DNA of 64,000 bases from assembly GCA_026770705.1 (NCBI GenBank), contig JANJGN010000007.1, positions 96,472,001-96,536,000 of the forward strand. The letters are read 5' to 3'. Positions 9,311 to 37,985 of this stretch are shown piece by piece (the stretch's first letter is position 1; every line of letters starts with the position of its first letter). Below the pieces are notes generated by a model, which saw nothing but the letters and a program-made list of their open reading frames with translations, was not told where the DNA came from and did no database searches. Origin of the DNA: Isurus oxyrinchus (Eukaryota). Both the position numbers and the translations under genes were made by a program.

Positions 9311-12300
9311 TGTCTCAGGTATTTACTAAAAGGGTGAAGCCACAAGGTAAATAGGTAAAATCAAAAGAATTTTACTGAACAGAATCAAAAATATGAATAC
9401 TGATAACGATACTCTAACTTAAATAGTCAGCTACATTAAATTTATTAAAAGTACAATGAACACAGTTACTTATACTCTAAATCAAACTTCTTATCTCAAC
9501 TCTCCTTCTACATGCATTTGACTTATATTGCCAATCACTCAGGTCAGAATTTGACGGATTAACTTCTTGGTCTAAGTAGTCATTCAAACACTCATGTAAT
9601 TACTGAGATTTCTTGGGCCTTCTACTTACTTCAGGCAATGTTTTCCCTTTAAATATCCTCCAGCTGTCTCACAGTTGTAAACACCCTTTCAAAGCACCAC
9701 TGGTGTCTTAAGCATAGCTACCTTGCATCAGAACTCTCCTGGTTCTAATGTTCTCTGGAGTCCTGTATCTATGAACTATTTCTATCGTTCTTCTCAGGTT
9801 GGCTATTACAGAAATCCAACCCATTGTTAGTAGAAACATTTTGTTTTCAAAGTTTTTTTTAAAAATTTCAGCCAGTACACACAGAATTTCAGCTGAATCC
9901 TGCTTGAAATAAATGTTCCTCTTGGCCAGCTTGTTCTAAACTAAACCCAATCTCATTGAACACAGAACAACACCTAGGGACATACTCACCCTCATAGTTA
10001 ACTTTGAATTGACCTTTTTTATTGTTTCTCTCTGAGGCAAGTTGGTCCCATGAGCATTTACTGGGAGAAAGGTGCTTTAGCTGAAATCTTTCAGAGAAAC
10101 ATAATTTTTGAAGGGGGTAATCATCCTAACATAAAACATCCTTATTTTCTCCAAAAGACCATTGGCCATCATAATGTATATAAATGGACAAAGCGTTGGC
10201 AATACGTTCAGTGAGCTACAAGCATGAAGTTGATGTTCTTCAGCTTTGACCTTCACAACACACCCTCGAACATCAGGTTTGGAACAAGAAAACTAGCACA
10301 CAGAGACCAAGGTTGCAGTTGGCTTTTAACCTGCCTTTTTGTGTATTCTTGGAAGGGGAAAGAACAAATGCCCATTTCACCAAGAAACTGTTTTCTGTCA
10401 ATTCACATCCTGTCCACAGTCTGGGATATAACGAACAGGAAATGGTTTCCACTGAGATGGTAATCAGCCTTCATTATCTCCACAACCACAAGAAATTATA
10501 GTTCAGTTTTTGAATTGCATCTGTTCCTTTGACGTGTCTCTGTCCAAAGCAGACCTTGAAAGCTTTTTAGGTGCGCCATTCTCTTCCCTGGACTAGTCAA
10601 GTCTAATTCTCATAGGGATTTTCCAGCAAGTGATCACTTTACAGTCTCTGTCAGTTTTTGTGTTTTCTTTTTTATCAAACACGTCTTACGTAAAAGTTCA
10701 ATATGTCCATAAGTAATTTGGGGCTATGATCTGTGGTCATGACACTTCCCCACACAATGAATTAAATGAGATTCATTCAACAAAGGTAGAATAAAATTAA
10801 ACATAATGTAACAAATACACACACATATTCATTCACTAAGGCTTGGTCACTGTTATCCCTTCAGTTCTAACCGAGTCTCTTTAAGTTCTGGACAGGGTAT
10901 CTGCAATCAAATTTGATTTCCCAGAAATGTGGGTGACTTTAAGATGGCATGGTTGGAGAAGCAAATTGTATCTTAACCATTTCCACAAAAGTTAACAGGT
11001 TGTAGCCAGTATAGACTGTGGTCTCTCTGTATCCATTTTGGACATATTTCTCAAAGTGTTTGAGAGCCAGTAATAAACTGAGCATTTCCTCCTCTACTGC
11101 GGAGTACCATTTTTGATGCTTGTTTACTTTTTTGGAGATTGGTCTCTCCACCTCTTAATCATCTTCCTGGAGGAGGACAGCCCCTACCCTGATGCCACTC
11201 ACATCAATGGCTACTTTAGGTGCTTGATTAAAGTATGGAGCTGCAAGCATAGAGGATGAATGATCTCAGGGATGTCGCCAGTGTGTAGCAACCATCTCAT
11301 CACTATAAACTCATACTCACAAGCCTATCACACATCCACTGGCATTTCACTCATTGCCAGCTCAGATGACATCACAACTCACTCTCTCACACATACCTTT
11401 ACATCTCTATCAATTCAACATGATGTCCGCACCGCCCCCCACCCCGCGCAACCCCCCCCCCCCCACAACAAAATAACGCAATTGGCTAAACCCACCACTA
11501 CATGTTTCATCAGGCATCAGGCTTTGAAAGCTGGCTGGGGCATTTCGCAGTCTACACGCCATGACTCAACACTGGTATAACCCATCGGGAGTTAAGGAGG
11601 AGATTTCCTTCACACAGGCAGTCAAGGGAATATGCCAGTATCCATTGAGTAGATCTATCTTTGTAATGTAGGCTGATTTACATACATTTTCAATGCCATC
11701 TTCCAGGTGGGGTATCAAGTAGGAGTCAGCTCGGGACACTGCATTAATGCTTCGGTAGTCAATGCAGAATCTTGTGAAGCCATCCGGCTTGGGCATGAGC
11801 ACAACTGGCGAGCTCCAGATGCTGTTGCTAGGCTATATTAGTTGGTGCTCTAGTTCAATGTGGGCCTCACCTACACCTCCCTCCAATTAACCCCCACTGC
11901 TATCCTTATCCTCAATGTCAGTGACATTGAGACAGACCATTACCTGCTTGTCCCCTTCTCGGCTATGATATTGCTTTATCATGTCGACATGATAAAACCT
12001 TTACTTTTTCCAGGATCTGGGGCCTCAGTTAGACAGCTTACTTCCCTGAGCTTCTTTACTACTCTGGACAGGCCAGTGAACCAAGCTTTTAAGGGTTCAC
12101 CTGTTATTGGTAGTCATGGACAACTCCAGGCACTTTCTCCTACAGCTGTTCTGTCTTCCTGACCTCAATGGGCTTCTCTGAGACCAACGCAGATACAATT
12201 ACCTTTAATCCCACGAGGTCATTGCCGAGAAGAATGTCAACCCGGTCCACAGGGAAACTGGGGACGACTCCCATGGTCACATGGTTCCCACACAAGATCG

Positions 12301-13945
12301 CACTCCAGATGCACTCAGGAGGTCGTGTACCCTCCTCAATCCCCACCAACACTTTGGCACTTATGGAACTCTCTGGTGAAAAGGTCATGCCTTTTCCCAG
12401 CAGTAGAGTTTGGCTGGCTCCTGTATCTGTCACTTTCACTACAGCCTTACTCGCCTCACCCTGGGAAAAAATGGCCAATGTGGCCACCCTTCCTTTGGAT
12501 CCAAAGTCCTTGCCACTCTCAGGGATTTGTTCAACCTCATCTGCACTCTCAGGAGTGCCTCTATAGGGATTTGCAGCCGCAGTCAGAGCCATAGTCTAGT
12601 CTGCAATGGTCTCTGACTGACCCCCATTCTCTACATGTATGTGCTTTGATTAATCCCAATGGTTTTTCCCAAAACCTCCAGCAGTTGGCCCAGACCCTAC
12701 ATTTCAGCAGTTAAAACACAGGCTTCTAGGCCTCACCTTTCATCTCAGCACAACCCTTTCTGTCCCGAAGAGGGCCCCCAGCAGTTCCCTCTATCTCATG
12801 GGTGCTCACATTCCTATCACTCTCTCCACCTCTATCCTTTCGAGTTGGTTGGGGGTGACTAGGGGAGGGTCTCTTCTGGAACAAGGGTTTGTGGATCAGC
12901 TCATAATCATCAGCCAGTATGGCAATCTGCCTGCCCCCTGTTATCCTCTGATCCTCCAGGTGTGTTCTTATTGGAAAGGGTATGGAGTTCTTAAACTCCT
13001 CAAAGAGAATTATTTCACTGAGATTTTTTTAAGTGGCTTCTGTTTTAAGTGCCTGCACATGCTGGTCAAAATCAAGTTGCTTAAGCCTTTCAAATTCCAG
13101 GTACATCTGGTCAGACCTTTTCCTGAGGGTAGGGAATTTCTGATGAGATGCCTCTGGCAATAACTGGTATGCACTTAAAACAGCCCTTTTTACTGCCTCA
13201 TAGTCAGTGACACTTTTCTCAGGCAATAGGGAGTAAATTAGATGAGTTTTCCCTGAAGGTTTACTCTGCCATAGCAGGGACAGATGTTGGACTGGCCACT
13301 TTAACTGATATGCTAACCCCACGAAAGTGATAAAGAAGGCATCTACCTCTGCTTCATCAAACTTCCAGATCAAATGAACAAACTTGATTGCCTGAGACCT
13401 TAAGTCTGAGCTGGTGGTGTCTTCAGGGGACACAATAAGCTTCCTTGCCCCTAGCTCAACTATTTTAATTTAATCCCCTTTCCTTCTCTCTGTCCTGAAA
13501 TTCACTCCCTTCTTTCCATGTCCTTTCCTGTCTTTCATCTTTCTCTTTTCCTTTCTTTTTATCATTCCTGAAATTCTAATTTCTGCTGCTCAAATTTTAA
13601 TCTTTCTCCTGCTACTCCATCCATTTCATTGACCATAATTGGCCATTGGCCACCCCTTTTAAAATTTTGGCAATATTCTAACCCTAAATCATTTAACTGT
13701 GCACAGGACAGAACTTTTAAATCCTCAAAAGTATCTTCCCCTAATTATCCCCGAAAAGCACTGGCATCAAATGTCGACATTTCTACACATTCATATTCTC
13801 TCTTTACCAGCATAACACAGTCACAAAAGTATTTTTGCTGTTTTTAGAAATTGGTTTCAAAGGAACAATTTACTTTCTCTACTCTAATCCTTTTGTTTAC
13901 TCTGTGGGAACAATTCCGGTACTGAACCCTTAATTTGTTACGACC
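9311..13945 (-). mobile_element. Decayed Gmr1-like Gypsy LTR retrotransposon (SCAN-like gag, protease, RT, RNaseH, 3' LTR)
   Basis: gag FDEAEVDAFF...KWP...DYEAVKRAVLSAYQLLPE (13029-13433); protease DTGASQTLL (12140-12592); RT PKPDGFTRFCIDYR...KIDLLNGYWHIPL (11566-11802); RNaseH YSAVEEEMLSLLLALKHFEKYV (10939-11151). PPT-like gtggggaag|TGTCA at about 10744; probable LTR about 9311-10744. Confidence 0.8.
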
Positions 13946-17381: not shown

Positions 17382-17436
17382 ATGTTTGTCGCGGATGTGC
17401 TTCAACTCATATGCGTGCTGGGGATCACCTGCGCAG
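17382..17436 (+). CDS. Exon 1: signal peptide MFVADVLQLICVLGITCA(G)
   Basis: caacATG start, hydrophobic 18 aa, CAG|GTAT donor, phase 1. Confidence 0.85.
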
Positions 17437-20400
17437 GTATTTTCTATTGTTTCTTTTCCCGCTCTCACTCTCCTCTCTCACCGTCTATTATTTTCCTCGC
17501 GCATTTCAGCTTCGTGTCTTATGTATCTTTCTGTTTTCTGCTAGTTATTATTCGAGCTCAGTTCCAAGTCTCCCAAGCTCCTAAAAGTACGAGCGCCCTC
17601 GTAGGCTCAAACGTCACCGTCTATTGCACTTTCCCTATTTTTCAAGATAACTCAGAAGTGGAAGTTTATTGGTGGAAACTTGGTGAAAGTGAATTTCTGC
17701 AAATGAGCTCCGACAATAGGAACATATTTGTCCTTTTTAAACAAGGAGGAGCCTCCTTTCATCTCCTGAATATCAGTGCCCGGGATTCCGGGGTGTATTA
17801 CTGCGGAGTCAAAACGCTGGAGAGCAGCATAGTCAATGGAACGGGCTCAACAATCAAAGTATCTGGTAAGTGATACTGGGGGAGGAAAGCAAACTCACAC
17901 ATCCGATGCTTTAAAATAATTATAGCTGCTGAATATTAGCTCAAAGATATACCAGGGCAACTGTTCAACTGCGCAGAATTCACTCTCCATTAGAAATTAT
18001 GCTACATATTCTTTCCATTGAAGTTAATTTAAGGGAAAATCGGCCATGGAATATTATGGGAGTTTAAGTTCAAAATAATTACAATAAATACTTATATTTA
18101 CCTCTCGTTGTGGAAACATCCGGTTACGTGTGATCATAACGCGTCGCTCATTCTGGACACCAGTGTTAACACAAATGCGGCAGGTTGAAAATCTGTCCCC
18201 CATTTCAAAATGAACAGATTCATCATGCCTATGATATTTTTTAATAAGTGGAATGTTTGTCTAATATCCGGACTAGCCATTAGCAGCTGATTATTATTGT
18301 TTCTTTTTAAAATACCGATATTATCCTTAGTTGCGTTGCATATGATTTGTTAAAATTGTTTTTTTTTGTTTCTTTCACACATCAAGAACATGAAGCGTAA
18401 ATTTTAAAATATTTTACAGTGCGAACTGGTCGGACAAATGTATTGTGTACTCTCTAAGTACAGATTAATGTCCTTTCCATTTTATTCTGCTCCGCTGCTG
18501 CTCTGCGTTGGCACAATAAAAGGTGAAATTAAAATAATTACAATGGTGTTAATTTATTTTGTTGATTGTTTGAAACAATGTGAATTCGCGTGGTCAAACA
18601 AAAAAACTATTTGGCCCGGCACGAAATAAAAAACGAAATAATCTTCTGTTGAAGGGTCACGAGGACTCGAAATGTCAACTGTGCTCTTCTCCGCCGATGC
18701 TGCCAGACTTGCTGAGTTTTTCCAGGTATTTCTGTTTCTGTTTTTGTTTTGAATCTTTAACATACCTTCTGTTGAACACCTAAATTTAAACTATTTACCC
18801 TCTCAAAATGTACAACTGCTCCACATTGTAAAAGCTGATACTTCTCTCCCAACACCACTAATCTGTAACCAACAACAGAAAAACAGGTGAAATTGGATAG
18901 CCTGCGATCAGCTCCTGCGACAATGCACCCGTCCCGCAATCAGACACAAATGTTCACCTAAACCCACCTGAGATTGGGCTCAATAACATCTGTAGGTAAC
19001 TATTGGATTGACAGGGATAGCTATCTCCACACATGAGGGTAACGTCTGTTGTCAGTTCCCAATCTGAAAAAAAAGCGATCCGCTCTGTAGCAAAGGCTCT
19101 GACTATTTTCACAATATTTCAAAGCTATAGAAAGTATTTCTGCGGTCACGCGTTATCTCCTTATTTGACCAAGTATTTAGAGTTTCATACAGGAACGTAT
19201 TTGCTTTTTTGCAATCCAACACGTTCACTATTTTACTGCGATAATATCTGGCTATTTTATACTCGTTAGTGTTTGCTGTTTTATGCTGTGACAGATTGAC
19301 AATATGCGGCAACATATTGGAGAATTGGTACTGGAACAAATTAGTTATTCAATTCTGAAACATATTATTTTGCAATGCATCATATTCGTTACTTTGCACT
19401 GTGGAATGTTTCTTAGTTTATAATTCAACACATTCTCTACTTAACCCAGCAATGTATTTGCTATTTTACGTGCAATATATATGTTGTTTTATAAGGCATT
19501 AAATTTACTGTTGCCTTTTGAAACATGTTTGCGATTTAAAGAAACACATTTTCATGTTTATTTTGCAACAATTTAATATTTTATATGGTTAAAGTATTTA
19601 TTATATCATCCTGTAGCATTTTTACCATTTTAGACTAACATGTTGTGCAATGCCACAAACCAGTTAGTAATTCATGTTGCACCACACTTACTGTTTCATT
19701 CTGAAACATATTTATTATTTAATACTGACAGTTCATTTTATATCATATTATAATGCTGAATATATGAGATGTATACCGTAACGTAGATGGAAAGTGTTAA
19801 CAGCTGCCTTTAAAGTGTAGGATATTTAACACGTCATATAAAACATTTGCTATTAATATTGTAACAGGTTTGTTATTTCTTCAGGTTATACAGAAGGGAA
19901 GTGTATGGAAACATTGATTATGGTTTATAAAGAAACAAAATGCCGATTTTGAAAATTGTAACAGAATTGTTCCCAATCTGTCAAAATATACTAATATGAT
20001 ATACTAGTTAAATTTGAACAGTCATTTATGACAATTCATACTGATATGATTTTATGATGTGTAGTTAAAATTCTTCGAAGGTAAACTTCACATGAACAGA
20101 ATTATCTTGTTTTTATGTAATGAGTAAAATATCGCAGTGATTATTCAATCCTATTTAAGGGCCCGAATAAAGTGAAGACAATTTGTGCGCTCAGCAACAA
20201 AATAACCCAAATTCTCGATCTTACCTGATTGTTTTTTTTTTCTTCTTACAGTTCCCCCAACTCCACTGCGGATTTTTGGCAAGGTACCTGAACCAAACTC
20301 CTCTGGTCTGAATCTTGTGTGCGAAACGGATGAGTTTTACCCGGAGGCGCTCAATCTCACTTGGTGCAAAAATGGGATTGAGATTATAACCGACATAGGG

Positions 20401-21072
20401 ACGAGCAAAACGTTGAAAATAGACGGTCTGTATGAAGTTTCCAGTTTGTTGACGGAGACACAGCCCGTCCAGAGGGGAAGTGTTTATACTTGTCAAGTGT
20501 CTCACGTCACCCTCCCGGTTCCAGCTAATGTGACCGTTGTGATTTCACAAACAATCAGAGGTAACTGGGCTTTTACACTCGAGTACAGCGTCAATGGGAA
20601 GTGAATTAGTTCAGAATTAGTTATTTAATCTGGATGTATGGTCCCTCAGCAAAAAAAGTCAATCTGATACTGCCAGCCTATGTTAGTCTGATTGTTCGGT
20701 ATTTTAACCCGGTTAACGTACTGATATTGTCCAAATAACAGATGTCGTGTCATATCTACTCTCTAATGTAGCAGGACATAACATAATTTCATAAACACTT
20801 TGAACTAAACACCTTTTTAAAAGAAACTTCAAAATCTCGCTACTGCATTGTTCGAAAGCAGAACTCGGGATCCAATGGAGTAGAGTTTATATTTAGCAGC
20901 CTGGAATAAATCTCGCGTTTCAGCTCGGCCACCCGTTAATATATCAGTCCGACTTTAATTTCTATTTGTATGTTTCCTAGTTCCTTTTAATAGATCAGTT
21001 ATGGTTGTTCGGTTTGTGACGAGCATATTGGTCCTTTTGATGTTGACAATAATCGTTGTGGATTATTTTTAG
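17382..21072 (+). CDS. Non-rearranging VJ-C1 Ig-superfamily activating receptor (NKp30/NCR3-like V, C1, Arg-containing TM); join(17382..17436,17545..17865,20252..20560,20981..21072), 258 aa
   Basis: Four exons, all GT-AG phase-1 junctions, 777 nt open to TAG. Leader, V-set, C1-set and TM motifs are all present, with 7 N-glycosylation sequons (NVT, NIS, NGT, NSS, NLT, NVT, NRS). Confidence 0.88.
17545..17865 (+). CDS. Exon 2: germline-joined VJ-type Ig domain
   Basis: Acceptor ttttctgctag|. Motifs FQVSQAP, VYCTF, VYWWK, DSGVYYC and a J-like NGTGSTIKVS. Donor G|GTAAGT. 321 nt. Confidence 0.93.
18640..18752 (+). mobile_element. Penelope 3' terminal fragment with hammerhead-like motif, in intron 2
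   Basis: ctgttgaagggtcacgaggactcgaaatgtcaact...gatgctgccagacttgctgagtttttccagg matches 58890-58985. Confidence 0.75.
20252..20560 (+). CDS. Exon 3: Ig C1-set domain
   Basis: Acceptor ttttttcttcttacag|. Motifs VPPTP...LVCETDEFYPEALNLTWCKNG...DGLYEVSSLL...YTCQVSH. Donor AG|GTAACT. 309 nt. Confidence 0.93.
20981..21072 (+). CDS. Exon 4: transmembrane segment VPFNRSVMVVRFVTSILVLLMLTIIVVDYF* (exon continues to the donor after 21085)
   Basis: Acceptor tgtttcctag|. Hydrophobic run with Arg (21010-12) and Asp (21061-63). TAG at 21070-72. AAG|GTAAGA donor at 21086. Confidence 0.85.
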
Positions 21073-21534
21073 TTCGATTTGAAAGGTAAGACATTCATTT
21101 CTTACTGATGGGCGATAGTTTAAGGACAGAGCAGAGACCGAGCAGAAGCAGTAAATGACGATTAGTTATTTCTGTGATGCTCAGAGCAGCACGTCTGCTT
21201 CTCTGGACCCAAGCACATCATTCAACATTGGACTTGAGTGGGTCTTTATGGCCTGGAAATGAGCAGACTACTTCTGGCCTAAAATGGCAATGAGGATTCG
21301 AGGGGTCCCTTTTTCTATTCGGTCGCATTGCGATTAGCCCTTTCCAAAATTAATGTGGTCTGTTTGTCATCGGAATTGGGTGATATGGCCAGAGACCCCA
21401 TAATAAGGCCCTGCCCGTCAACATCTGAAAACGGAAGTGATACTTGACTTCACTTTCTACTCTGCATATGAACTCAGATAATTACTTTTTTTTACATTAA
21501 GTTACTAACTATATATATTATGCAATTGATCAAC

Positions 21535-21980
21535 ATAGAACATATAGGAGCATAGGACTTAGCAAGCTTAGGCAATTTTGGTCATTGGGGCCGGCTCCAC
21601 CATTCAGTTAGATCATGGCTGATCTGGTTGTGGTCTCAACTCCACTTTCCCGTCTGCCCCCATAACCCTCGACTCCCTTGTCTGCCAAAAATCTATCCAC
21701 CTCAGCCTTGGATAAATTGAATGATCCAGTTTCCAGTGTTTTCTGAGGAAGTGAATTCTGTAGACTATGGACCCTCTGAAAGAAAAAAAAACTAATCTCT
21801 GATTTACTCATTTATTTCTAAACGGTATCCCCTAGTTCCAGTCTATCCCACAAGAGAAAACAACTTCCCGTTATCCACCCTATCAAATCCCCTCAGGATC
21901 TTCCGTATTTCAAGGAGATCATTCTCATTCTTCTAAACTTAAGCGGGCTAAGGCCCAACCTGTGCAACCTTTCTGAATCA
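21535..21980 (-). mobile_element. CR1 LINE 3' end in the last intron
   Basis: acatagaacat tail repeat and typical CR1 3' UTR; ORF FFFQRVHSLQNSLPQK. Confidence 0.75.
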
Positions 21981-22438: not shown

Positions 22439-22503
22439 ACACCACCGGACAGAAAATTGATCGAAGAGACCCCGACATTGGAAATGCTGCGAAGATGGTT
22501 TAG
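22439..22503 (+). pseudogene. Exon 5: probable former cytoplasmic-tail exon DTTGQKIDRRDPDIGNAAKMV*, now 3' UTR because of the upstream TAG
   Basis: Acceptor tttcctatttctcag|AC, phase compatible with the 21085 donor, hydrophilic 21 aa then TAG. ATTAAA at 22594. Confidence 0.55.
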
Positions 22504-23084
22504 GAACACATCAATGCCTGGATACCGAAAGCTCCTGGCATATTGAGTGCAACCTCTACCACCCTGTATCCTGCAATGATAATACATTTGTTGATTAAAC
22601 GTGGCAGCGAATCTCTAACAATTAGTTGACAACAGACCAAATATGAAGCGAGAAAAACTGCCCTTGAAGGAAAGCGTTTGAAAATACTTTTGCAATGTTT
22701 TGCCGAGTTGAGTTCAGTTTTGGGACGGAACAAGCGGTGGCCAAAAAAATAATTATATTTGTTAAAAGGTCAGAATTGATTAAATCTGCATAACAAAAAG
22801 TTCTAAGTGATGATCAAAGAATAATCTAGATTAAAAAATAACAGTTTTAAATGACACTCATAATCCCATCATACAGCAGTGCAACAGAGTCTTGGTGGCC
22901 CAAAGTGATGGCCTGTAAAAGTAATCCAGAAATGTGAGGTTTGTCAAAGATACAAATTGTATTGGTCTGAAGTTCGTTCTACGGATGCATTAAATTTTGG
23001 GATGCCGACTGAACTGTGGGGGTTGAATTGTTCTGTTTAGACCAAAACAGCAAAACGTTAATGAAAAAAAATCAGTGAAATTGA

Positions 23085-36289: not shown

Positions 36290-37985
36290 TGGATTCTGTC
36301 CTTCTCCCTGTCAACTGCCTAAGGCTGAACCAGCCTATTTGTAACCTTCGTATTTTTTTGTGGCCCCGAGATTAGATTCTGATCAGATATCTGCCCCAGC
36401 ACTGAGTTTGCGTACCTCCACTTCCATAACATGACCACACTTTGCTGTTGTCCATGAATCTGCTGTTGAAATCCTTATACATGCCATTGTTACCTCTAGA
36501 TCTTACTATCCCAATGCACCCCTGGTCTTATTCATCTCAAACTGCTTCACAGGAGAGAGATCAAACAGAATTCAACATCAAACCAGTTAGGACAGATAGC
36601 CAACAGCTTGATCAAAGAGGTAGGTTTTAAGAAGCATCTTAAAGAAGGAAGGTGAAACAGAGAGGTTTAGGGAGGCTTTTCCAGAGCTTAGGGCCAAGCA
36701 GCTGAAGGCACTCTACAATGGTATAGGGATTAAAATTGGGGTGCACAGGTGGTAAGCATTGGAGGAGCTCAGAAATCCCAGAGGGTTGGAAGGTTGGAAG
36801 AATTCTGGGGGAAAGGATATGCCCATGAGGGATTTGAAAACAAAGATGAGAATTTTAAAAATGCAGTATTGACCAATCCAAAGGCAATATAGGTCAGAAA
36901 GCACAGGGGTGATGGACGGATTGAAATGGTGCAAGTTAGGATACAGGCAGCAAGTTTTAGATAAGTTTAAGTTCATGAAAAATGAAAGATGGGAGGTCGA
37001 TGAAATTTGGGGCAAGTTATGGAGATGGAAGTCTCAGTGATGCGGCAGATACCTGATAAGAAACTCAGCTCAGGATCAAATGCAACAAACAATCGAGTTG
37101 AGCATTAGACGATTCCAAAGAAAAGTCATGGACTCTGCAGTGGCTATGGGATGGAGTTTGTGGTGAGGTCCAATGGCAATTGCTTGGTCTTCCCAATAAT
37201 TAGTTGGAGGAAATTTCTGCTCATTCAGCACTTAGATGTATGACATGTTGGCTGATAATGTAGAGACAACAAAGAAGTTGAAATATGTGTAGGTAAGGTA
37301 GAGCTGTACATGTGAAAACTGATGTGTTTTTGGATGATGTTGCTGAGGCGCTGCCTGTAGATAAGAAAAAGAAAGGGCTAAGATAGTTCTTTGGGAGTCA
37401 CCATACAAGGATGGGAATAGAATCCACTCTGGCTTATTTACCGAAGATAAAGTGTGGAACCAGGCGAGTGCATTCCACCCAATTGGATGATGGAGTTGAA
37501 GCTTTGGAGGAGGATGTTGCAGCTAGCCATATTGAAGTTTGCAGACAGGTCTAAGAGGACAATGAAGAATAGCTTACCAAAGTCACAGTTACAAAGGATG
37601 TCATTTGTGTTTTCTGGGAGGGGTAGATATCTAATTGGAGTGATTCAAGCATGAAATAATTGGAAAAAATTGCAAACACTTCAGGGAGAAAAAGGGGGGT
37701 TTGAGATGGGACAGTAGTTTGCAAGGATGGTGGCAAGGGGTTTCTTTGAGGGGGGGACAATGGTAGCAAATATGAAGGGGAGGGGGACAGTACCTGAGGA
37801 GAGTGAACCACTAAAAACTGCAGCTAACATGAGGGCCAGGAAGAGAAATTGGGTGGTCAGCAGTTTAGTAGGAATAAGATCAAGGGAGCAGGAGGTGGGT
37901 CTCATGGGCTAGCTGTGTTTGAAGAGGGCATGAGACGAGGGGAAAGAAACTAGAGAACAATGCGAGCTCAGAGCTAGGGCAGAGT
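36290..37985 (-). mobile_element. L2 LINE fragments (minus copy about 36545-37985; short plus copy about 36290-36530)
   Basis: RPTSCSLDLIPTKLL...SLSSGTVP...LANYCPISN and SITPVLSDLYCL...FKILIFVFKSL are L2 RT motifs. Confidence 0.75.

Follow-up and report, generated by a model that had tools for sequence, protein, structure and literature searches.

The window analyzed here, a stretch of 64,000 nucleotides from Isurus oxyrinchus (GCA_026770705.1, contig JANJGN010000007.1, positions 96,472,001 to 96,536,000 of the forward strand), contains an apparently intact, germline-joined VJ-C1 gene for a type I receptor, composed of a leader, a V domain that has the J built in, a C1 domain and a transmembrane (TM) anchor with an arginine near its top. 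On balance, and with reserve, we favor the reading that the TM exon of this gene anchors an activating-arm member of a receptor family found in sharks, in which the other members have uncharged anchors and tails with immunoreceptor tyrosine-based inhibitory motifs (ITIM). The gene belongs to a conserved class of shark receptors with an Arg in the anchor, and in separate trees of the V and C1 domains it groups both with a member of this class and with an ITIM-tailed relative. Every search, alignment and tree was done on single exons and not on a spliced protein.

The membrane anchor and its gene

The TM exon is in phase 1 and is preceded by the acceptor ttgtatgtttcctag (tcctag/, with the AG at 20979-20980; the slash marks the exon border here and below). 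Its frame from 20983 encodes (V)PFNRSVMVVRFVTSILVLLMLTIIVVDYF and then TAG at 21070-21072; the remaining two frames of the exon contain stops or are not hydrophobic. Two charged residues delimit the core of the anchor:

21010-21012, plus strand: TM arginine (CGG), fifth residue of the 21-residue hydrophobic span VMVVRFVTSILVLLMLTIIVV
21061-21063, plus strand: aspartate (GAT), exactly at Arg +17, at the inner end of the helix

Four hydrophobic residues (VMVV) stand ahead of the Arg, and the strictly hydrophobic core from Arg to Asp has only 16 residues. The stalk is devoid of Cys and the TM of Lys. After the Asp there are two residues and the stop, with no ITIM and no ITAM (immunoreceptor tyrosine-based activation motif). 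A preliminary description of this stretch, made from the sequence alone, had given the anchor peptide as VVRFVTSILVLLMLTIIVVDYF (a 22-mer, 21004-21069) with an Arg-Asp spacing of exactly 17, and on re-reading the peptide, its coordinates and the spacing are correct. It had also pointed out the lack of ITIM and ITAM, which is true but trivial, since the reading frame stops three codons past the Asp.

The combination is rare in the window. Among the 53,903 stop-free segments of 18 residues found in the six frames of the 64 kb, 253 have R first and D or E last, and only one of these R-x16-D/E segments, that of the TM exon, has a hydrophobic core (core mean of 3.0, the criterion being a 16-residue mean Kyte-Doolittle value of at least 2.0). 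When shark proteins were compared with the window by tblastn, the TM exon was matched by P0001 (5.6e-4), P0158 (0.003) and P0157 (0.071), and it is homologous to the TM region of these proteins from other sharks.

The exon closes a gene with the following parts:

17382-17436, plus strand: leader exon, with the ATG at 17382 and 18 codons (MFVADVLQLICVLGITCA) plus 1 base; donor GCGCAG/gtat; phase 1, matching the next exon
17545-17865, plus strand: VJ-type V exon, with Cys...WW...DSGVYYC and the J-like NGTGSTIKVS; acceptor gctag/, donor ATCTG/gtaagt; phase 1 at both ends
20252-20560, plus strand: C1-set exon, ...LVCETDEFYPEALNLTW...YTCQVSH...; acceptor cttacag/, donor TCAGAG/gtaac; phase 1
20981-21072, plus strand: coding part of the TM exon, with a stalk containing an NRS glycosylation sequon, the TM VMVVRFVTSILVLLMLTIIVV, DYF and TAG (21070-21072)
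21073-21085, plus strand: remainder of the TM exon after the stop, TTCGATTTGAAAG, 13 bases, with an intact donor GAAAG/gtaag (between 21085 and 21086), as read from the sequence
22439-22503, plus strand: putative last exon, acceptor ctcag/, which without the TAG would read DTTGQKIDRRDPDIGNAAKMV, with the stop at 22501-22503

All the junctions in this plus-strand leader-V-C1-TM gene are AG/GT and in phase 1, and the split codons fit. No stop interrupts the leader, V or C1 exon, and the canonical immunoglobulin (Ig) residues and the splice sites are all intact. The V exon is a Pfam V-set (4.5e-09, 36.9 bits, cut-off of 26) that holds the V and the J motif (GxG) in one exon, the J-like NGTGSTIKVS being its last residues. 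A single exon, a Pfam C1-set (5.6e-13, 49.5 bits, cut-off of 21), lies between the V and TM exons. Pfam gave no match in the TM exon, as expected of a membrane anchor. We found no second copy of the gene in the window by tblastn with the translations of the three exons. The putative last exon at 22439-22503 has no likeness to the tails of the relatives by tblastn, and no RNA contig falls on it; the first poly(A) signal (ATTAAA) 3' of the TM exon is at 22594.

An Arg-anchored class among shark receptors

The HMMER scan with the V exon retrieved 323 proteins at E ≤0.001, 5 of them at E ≤1e-30. The best V match is P0001 from Heterodontus francisci (XP_067905015.1), with 82% identity in V and 71% in C1, followed by P0002 from Mustelus asterias (XP_078066431.1), with 76% identity in V. 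The names of the relatives are inconsistent automatic labels, such as tapasin-related, NCR3LG1-like, lambda light chain-like, SIRP-alpha-like and SIRP-beta-like. Our literature search found no paper describing an Arg-TM class of shark VJ-C1 receptors, and the family is public only as inconsistently named automatic predictions. Three relatives gave no NCBIfam family, as expected from a bacterial library, and a search with residues 222-271 of P0005 gave only 2 proteins out of 4 candidates. For the P0005 TM part, a protein atlas returned no usable feature match and, by structure, only generic helices.

We took all the 97 fetched proteins with both V and C1 as the base of a census. A membrane anchor follows the C1 domain in 77 of them, and in the other 20 there is no TM. 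The Arg-TM class comprises 16 sequences, or 13 genes when isoforms are collapsed, from nine species: Heterodontus francisci, Carcharodon carcharias, Cetorhinus maximus, Mustelus asterias, Scyliorhinus canicula, S. torazame, Chiloscyllium plagiosum, C. punctatum and Heptranchias perlo. These cover both Galeomorphii and Squalomorphii. ITIM-like tails were found in 34 proteins, with any charge in the anchor core in only two of them, and 27 have a TM with no tyrosine motif, some being truncated gene models. None of the 16 sequences of the Arg-TM class has an ITAM.

The anchors of this class are conserved well beyond the Arg. In an alignment of eight full-length Arg-TM relatives (A1), the Arg, Leu at +3, Ile at +15 and His at +18 are invariant (8/8). 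A second alignment restricted to the TM anchors (A2), with 14 rows, one per gene (13 relatives and the window gene), is gapless from the Arg to +18 in all the rows, which fixes a 16-residue core. The Arg is present in 13 of the 14 rows (12 of the 13 relatives), with Gln in P0160, and the neighboring columns vary. At +17 there is D or E in 10 rows (9 of the 13 relatives), replaced by Asn in two Heptranchias genes and by Val in two Scyliorhinus genes. The His at +18 is better kept in the class than the acid, being found in 12 rows (12 of the 13 relatives), with Tyr in the window gene and in P0160. The acid at +17 is usual but not obligatory in this TM class, where it follows from the fixed helix length. 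The preliminary description had read the anchor as an Arg followed by an acid at +17 and had held that an Arg not conserved among relatives would speak against its reading. The Arg is conserved, as the 13 of 14 rows indicate (with D/E at +17 in 10 of 14), and this half of the signature stands; the strict acid does not, given the Asn in two and the Val in two of the 13 relatives. Its proposal of an activating-type TM on a VJ and C1 ectodomain is also supported.

Four members of the class, P0001, P0158 (Mustelus asterias), P0005 (Carcharodon carcharias, XP_041048274.1) and P0105 (Scyliorhinus canicula, XP_038662025.1), share with the window gene the VJ and C1 domains and the gapless Arg TM. They differ from it in the short, tyrosine-poor tail that continues past the His, whereas the window gene ends at D-Y-F. 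Across the class, the tails after the His have 4 to 49 residues and are not conserved.

Some of these tails are worth recording on their own. A V-x-Y-x-x-L match is found in the short tails of two Arg-anchored members, P0105 (VRYVQL, right after the helix) and P0086 from Chiloscyllium punctatum (VGYDAL, at the C-terminus). In the public model of P0001, about 150 N-terminal residues are unrelated to the family, and its 3' tail may read through a splice donor. Past the TAG, in another frame, the window DNA reads FER with a stop in the next codon, and FER also occurs within the P0001 tail. The odd tail of P0001 is probably a gene-model artefact.

The relation between Arg-anchored and ITIM-tailed members was followed in separate V and C1 trees of 53 rows each (IQ-TREE quick search, with SH-aLRT support). 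Their input was the window gene and 52 census proteins (13 Arg-TM, 22 ITIM-tailed and 17 others), leaving out isoforms, anchorless models and the relatives fetched after tree building. The window gene groups with P0001, which has an Arg TM, and P0002, which has an ITIM tail, with support of 100 in the V tree and 98 in the C1 tree. Over well-supported branches, the Arg-TM label requires at least 6 changes in the V tree or at least 5 in the C1 tree. The closest relatives of the P0001 ectodomain are ITIM-tailed as well: P0172 from Heptranchias (82%), and P0002 from Mustelus and P0173 from S. torazame (69%). Like ectodomains with opposite anchors and tails amount, at the level of sequence, to a paired-receptor design. 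Since the Arg anchors resemble each other across lineages, their scatter is likely to stem from exon exchange or ectodomain conversion. A precedent is given in the available part of PMC8102735, where macaque activating KIR are said to have originated when a TM exon was recombined onto a different ectodomain.

The use of such an anchor can be proposed from better known receptors. According to the available part of PMC13107469, CD89 binds the FcR-gamma dimer via an Arg near the TM top, NKp30 and NKp46 are assumed to use a top Arg with zeta or gamma, the upper Arg of the T-cell receptor (TCR) alpha chain binds zeta-zeta, and the DxxxT modules (DAP12, CD3) take a central Lys. In KIR2DL4 and macaque KIR, an Arg at TM position 4 binds FcR-gamma and a Lys at position 9 binds DAP12, as stated in the excerpt of PMC8102735. 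By analogy, the window gene would encode a receptor with no signalling tail of its own and with the Arg about one helical turn beneath the outer membrane surface. There it would most likely dock onto the aspartate pair of a dimeric ITAM adaptor, and this docking would permit surface expression and activating signalling. For an adaptor of the zeta/FcR-gamma type we infer roughly even odds; it is preferred to DAP12 because the residue is an Arg, not a Lys, and is placed near the top of the helix. The acid at +17 would mark the inner end of a helix of fixed length and may, as a guess, touch basic juxtamembrane residues of the adaptor. A literature search for FCER1G and TYROBP in sharks returned nothing pertinent.

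Condition of the window copy and alternative readings

Several observations weigh against an activating anchor. In the family, the acid at +17 is swapped for Asn or Val in 4 of the 13 relatives, and an Arg likewise tops the anchor of the ITIM-tailed P0002, in the IYRS context of one subgroup of the Arg anchors. Therefore, the Arg alone is no proof of an activating role and the two arms are not cleanly separate; the excerpt of PMC8102735 reports Arg and ITIM together in human KIR2DL4 too. The NxxR motif of FcR-gamma-binding anchors is absent, the window gene having MVVR, and among the 13 relatives only P0058 (NIFR) has the N. The window copy itself has Thr at +3, where the eight full-length relatives of A1 have Leu, and Tyr at +18, a column with His in 12 of the remaining 13 rows of A2. 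Its TAG falls exactly at the first basic residue of the relatives (DHLK, DHFK, DYAK), the inner side of the helix is left without Lys or Arg, and its stalk is about 7 residues shorter than theirs. Finally, the RNA support is limited to the V exon, with no contig of run X10, which is RNA by guess only, on the C1 or TM exons.

The peculiarities of this copy could mean that a member of a birth-and-death family was disabled here not long ago and that no working receptor is made. The TAG, the two replaced residues at otherwise conserved positions and the shortened stalk would be early signs of decay, and the lack of RNA on the C1 and TM exons would fit this explanation, which we regard as possible but unlikely. 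Against it stand the open leader, V and C1 exons, with canonical Ig residues and splice sites all intact. Class tails past the His can be as short as 4 residues (P0161, VHFKRS; P0162, VHFKRC) or 6 residues (P0158, P0159 and P0164), and since natural tails are so short, a stop that comes three codons sooner fits the range of the family. D-Y is also found at the same place in P0160, another member of the class.

The reads bear on the same question. Run X10 contains one contig of 216 letters, 203 of which lie on 17543-17745, in the V exon. The match starts two bases before the exon; these two bases, AG, are also the last two of the leader, and 13 letters are left over upstream. Judging from this edge of the match, with the leftover letters unread, it would look like a contig compatible with the leader-to-V splice, and such a splice argues against decay. 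Coverage of the whole stretch comes from three DNA runs (X1-X3, two studies), all differing from the window at the same ~80 positions between 17300 and 22600 (~1.5%), the position-by-position differences being known as far as 19276, short of the C1 and TM exons and the TAG. Six differences are in the V exon, among them three amino acid replacements (Ile to Leu, Val to Ile and Thr to Ile) and two silent changes. Two of the V-exon differences recur in the X10 contig, which is probably RNA. The haplotype or population of X1-X3 is other than the assembled one.

We also considered that the stop could have amputated an inhibitory tail, and rejected it. From each fetched protein shorter than 520 aa, the C-terminal 130 residues were compared by tblastn with the whole window, and the tails of the relatives matched only the TM exon and weak chance sites. 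The best other match, at 37855-37950 (E of 0.017), contains stops and has no TM before it.

An activating receptor could also have DAP12 or DAP10 (or a shark-specific adaptor) as partner, rather than zeta or FcR-gamma. Basic-acidic docking is common to all these adaptors in the available parts of PMC1440944 and PMC13107469, the latter of which pairs the Arg of NKG2D with DAP10, and some relatives are automatically named "signal-regulatory protein beta-1-like". On the other hand, the DAP12 types use a central Lys and the Arg of NKG2D lies mid-membrane (PMC13107469 and PMC8102735, in the same parts), while the Arg here is the fifth residue of the span. This partnership is quite unlikely, and we keep to an activating anchor with a zeta/FcR-gamma-type adaptor.

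The anchor had been called LRC-type in the preliminary description, in reference to receptors of the leukocyte receptor complex (LRC). We consider it very unlikely that the TM shares descent with the FcR-gamma-binding TM of LRC/KIR-like receptors (NKp46, GPVI, FcaRI, LILRA). Those receptors have the same geometry, in which an Arg close to the top is followed by an acid some 17 residues on. The available part of PMC2413239 records the TM1 type already in Xenopus FcR-like genes, a sign of its age. In that same part, NxxR is the defining motif of the FcR-gamma-binding TM in LRC, KIR-like and Xenopus FcR-like receptors, and this motif is missing from the window gene and 12 of the 13 relatives. No match was obtained by phmmer with the TM exon against solved structures, and the six matches of the A2 TM profile were all chance serpin fragments (E of 0.1 to 0.24), with no receptor and no TCR chain among them. 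The LRC-type assignment is not supported, in view of MVVR in the place of NxxR, of Ig domains that are V and C1, and of a TM profile that matched no solved receptor TM. The window gene resembles the FcR-gamma/zeta receptors by geometry and, as far as its residues indicate, falls outside their TM class.

Anchors of the same geometry are found in other vertebrates among the HMMER matches. Turtle V-set proteins have R-x-V-L-G at the Arg and Glu at +17, and in a frog match named NKp30 the R-x-V-L-G goes with Gln at +17 and with Glu at +18. In P0056, a catfish Ig-superfamily protein, the acid is at +18 and the R-x-V-L-G start is missing. Several shark members have RLVLG or RFVLG, or else RSILG, RLILG or RFILG, with Ile for Val. 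The likeness among turtle, frog and shark anchors hints at an old anchor type, short of proving common descent.

The least probable alternative, that the Arg docks no adaptor and is only a snorkelling residue at the membrane boundary of a tail-less decoy or of a non-signalling, ligand-presenting molecule, could appeal to the core of only 16 residues, which might bring the Arg near the interface, and to the top Arg joined to an ITIM tail in P0002, but it must face the four hydrophobic residues (VMVV) ahead of the Arg, an Arg column kept in 12 of the 13 relatives though its neighbors vary, and the rule of uncharged anchors in the ITIM-tailed members (core charge in only 2 of 34).

Other features of the window are repeats. 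The intervals 18539-18892, in the V-C1 intron, and 21548-21901, downstream of the TM exon, reach a huge depth (up to ~1.8 million, summed over contigs) in each of the four runs, and many contig joints connect 18725-18752 with 21597-21657. Both intervals are copies of a highly repeated interspersed element. Between 10939 and 13433, on the minus strand, there are open reading frames (ORFs) typical of a long terminal repeat (LTR) retrotransposon:

11566-11802, minus strand: ORF, reverse-transcriptase-like piece
12140-12592, minus strand: ORF, aspartic-protease-like piece with DTGA
13029-13433, minus strand: ORF, gag-like piece

Meaning and comparison with known receptors

In the biology of mammalian natural killer (NK), myeloid and T cells, a central place is taken by paired inhibitory and activating receptors and by ITAM adaptors onto which a buried basic residue docks. 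The family described here, light-chain- or TCR-shaped and non-rearranging, has a conserved Arg-anchored class in both major shark lineages, re-paired with inhibitory relatives at least 5 times, which puts the design at an early stage of the jawed vertebrates. The window copy is one example of this class, slightly odd, and concrete genes are now at hand for tests of adaptor binding.

A wider reading, which we regard as possible but unlikely, is that the Arg TM docks zeta-zeta or FcR-gamma as in TCR alpha/delta and that the anchor exon is an ancient module repeatedly recombined onto inhibitory receptors. If so, the signalling half of the TCR would have been present on never-rearranged, antigen-receptor-like chains already at the base of jawed vertebrates, and a TM exon with R-x-V/I-L-G and the acid, common to the frog NKp30-like and turtle V-set proteins, would have made activating partners in sharks.

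Against solved structures, the family profile recovered antibody chains (8.7e-33), UrIg2 as the second-best (9dmx, 5.3e-29) and SIRP-alpha (2wng, 1.1e-23), and the ectodomain is, by these similarities, of a generic antigen-receptor-like V-C1 kind. The known systems resemble the window gene in different parts. CD89, NKp46, NKp30, KIR2DL4, the macaque activating KIR and the TM1 of Xenopus XFL share with it, in the available descriptions, the top Arg, the short or absent signalling tail and the existence of inhibitory relatives. However, these FcR-gamma/zeta receptors have LRC-type domains where the window gene has V and C1, the NxxR is absent here, and no homology was found between the TM sequences.

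The SIRP family likewise places C1 after a V domain that carries a J-like motif and has the paired design, inhibitory in SIRP-alpha and activating in SIRP-beta, and many of the relatives were automatically named SIRP-like. It differs in having two C1 domains against one in the window gene, and both antibody chains and UrIg2 outscore SIRP-alpha against the profile. SIRP-beta uses Lys and DAP12.

UrIg, UrIg2 and PRARP, all of them non-rearranging VJ-C1 genes, have the same germline-joined VJ exon and C1. An identity with UrIg was rejected on the number of domains, since UrIg2 has nine C1-type domains in the available part of PMC12227049, against a single one here.

The TCR alpha and delta chains share with the window gene the V-J-C1 order, an upper TM Arg that docks zeta-zeta in the TCR and the near lack of a cytoplasmic tail, and V-C1 chains with basic TM residues are the build of the TCR chains in general (available part of PMC13107469). 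The window gene differs from them in that it is not rearranged, with V and J in one exon, and has neither the stalk cysteine nor the central TM Lys for CD3. The joining of a C1-containing VJ ectodomain to an activating-type anchor, which had been presented as an unusual combination, was overstated as such, since the same combination is found in the automatic gene predictions of nine shark species and the build of the TCR is similar.

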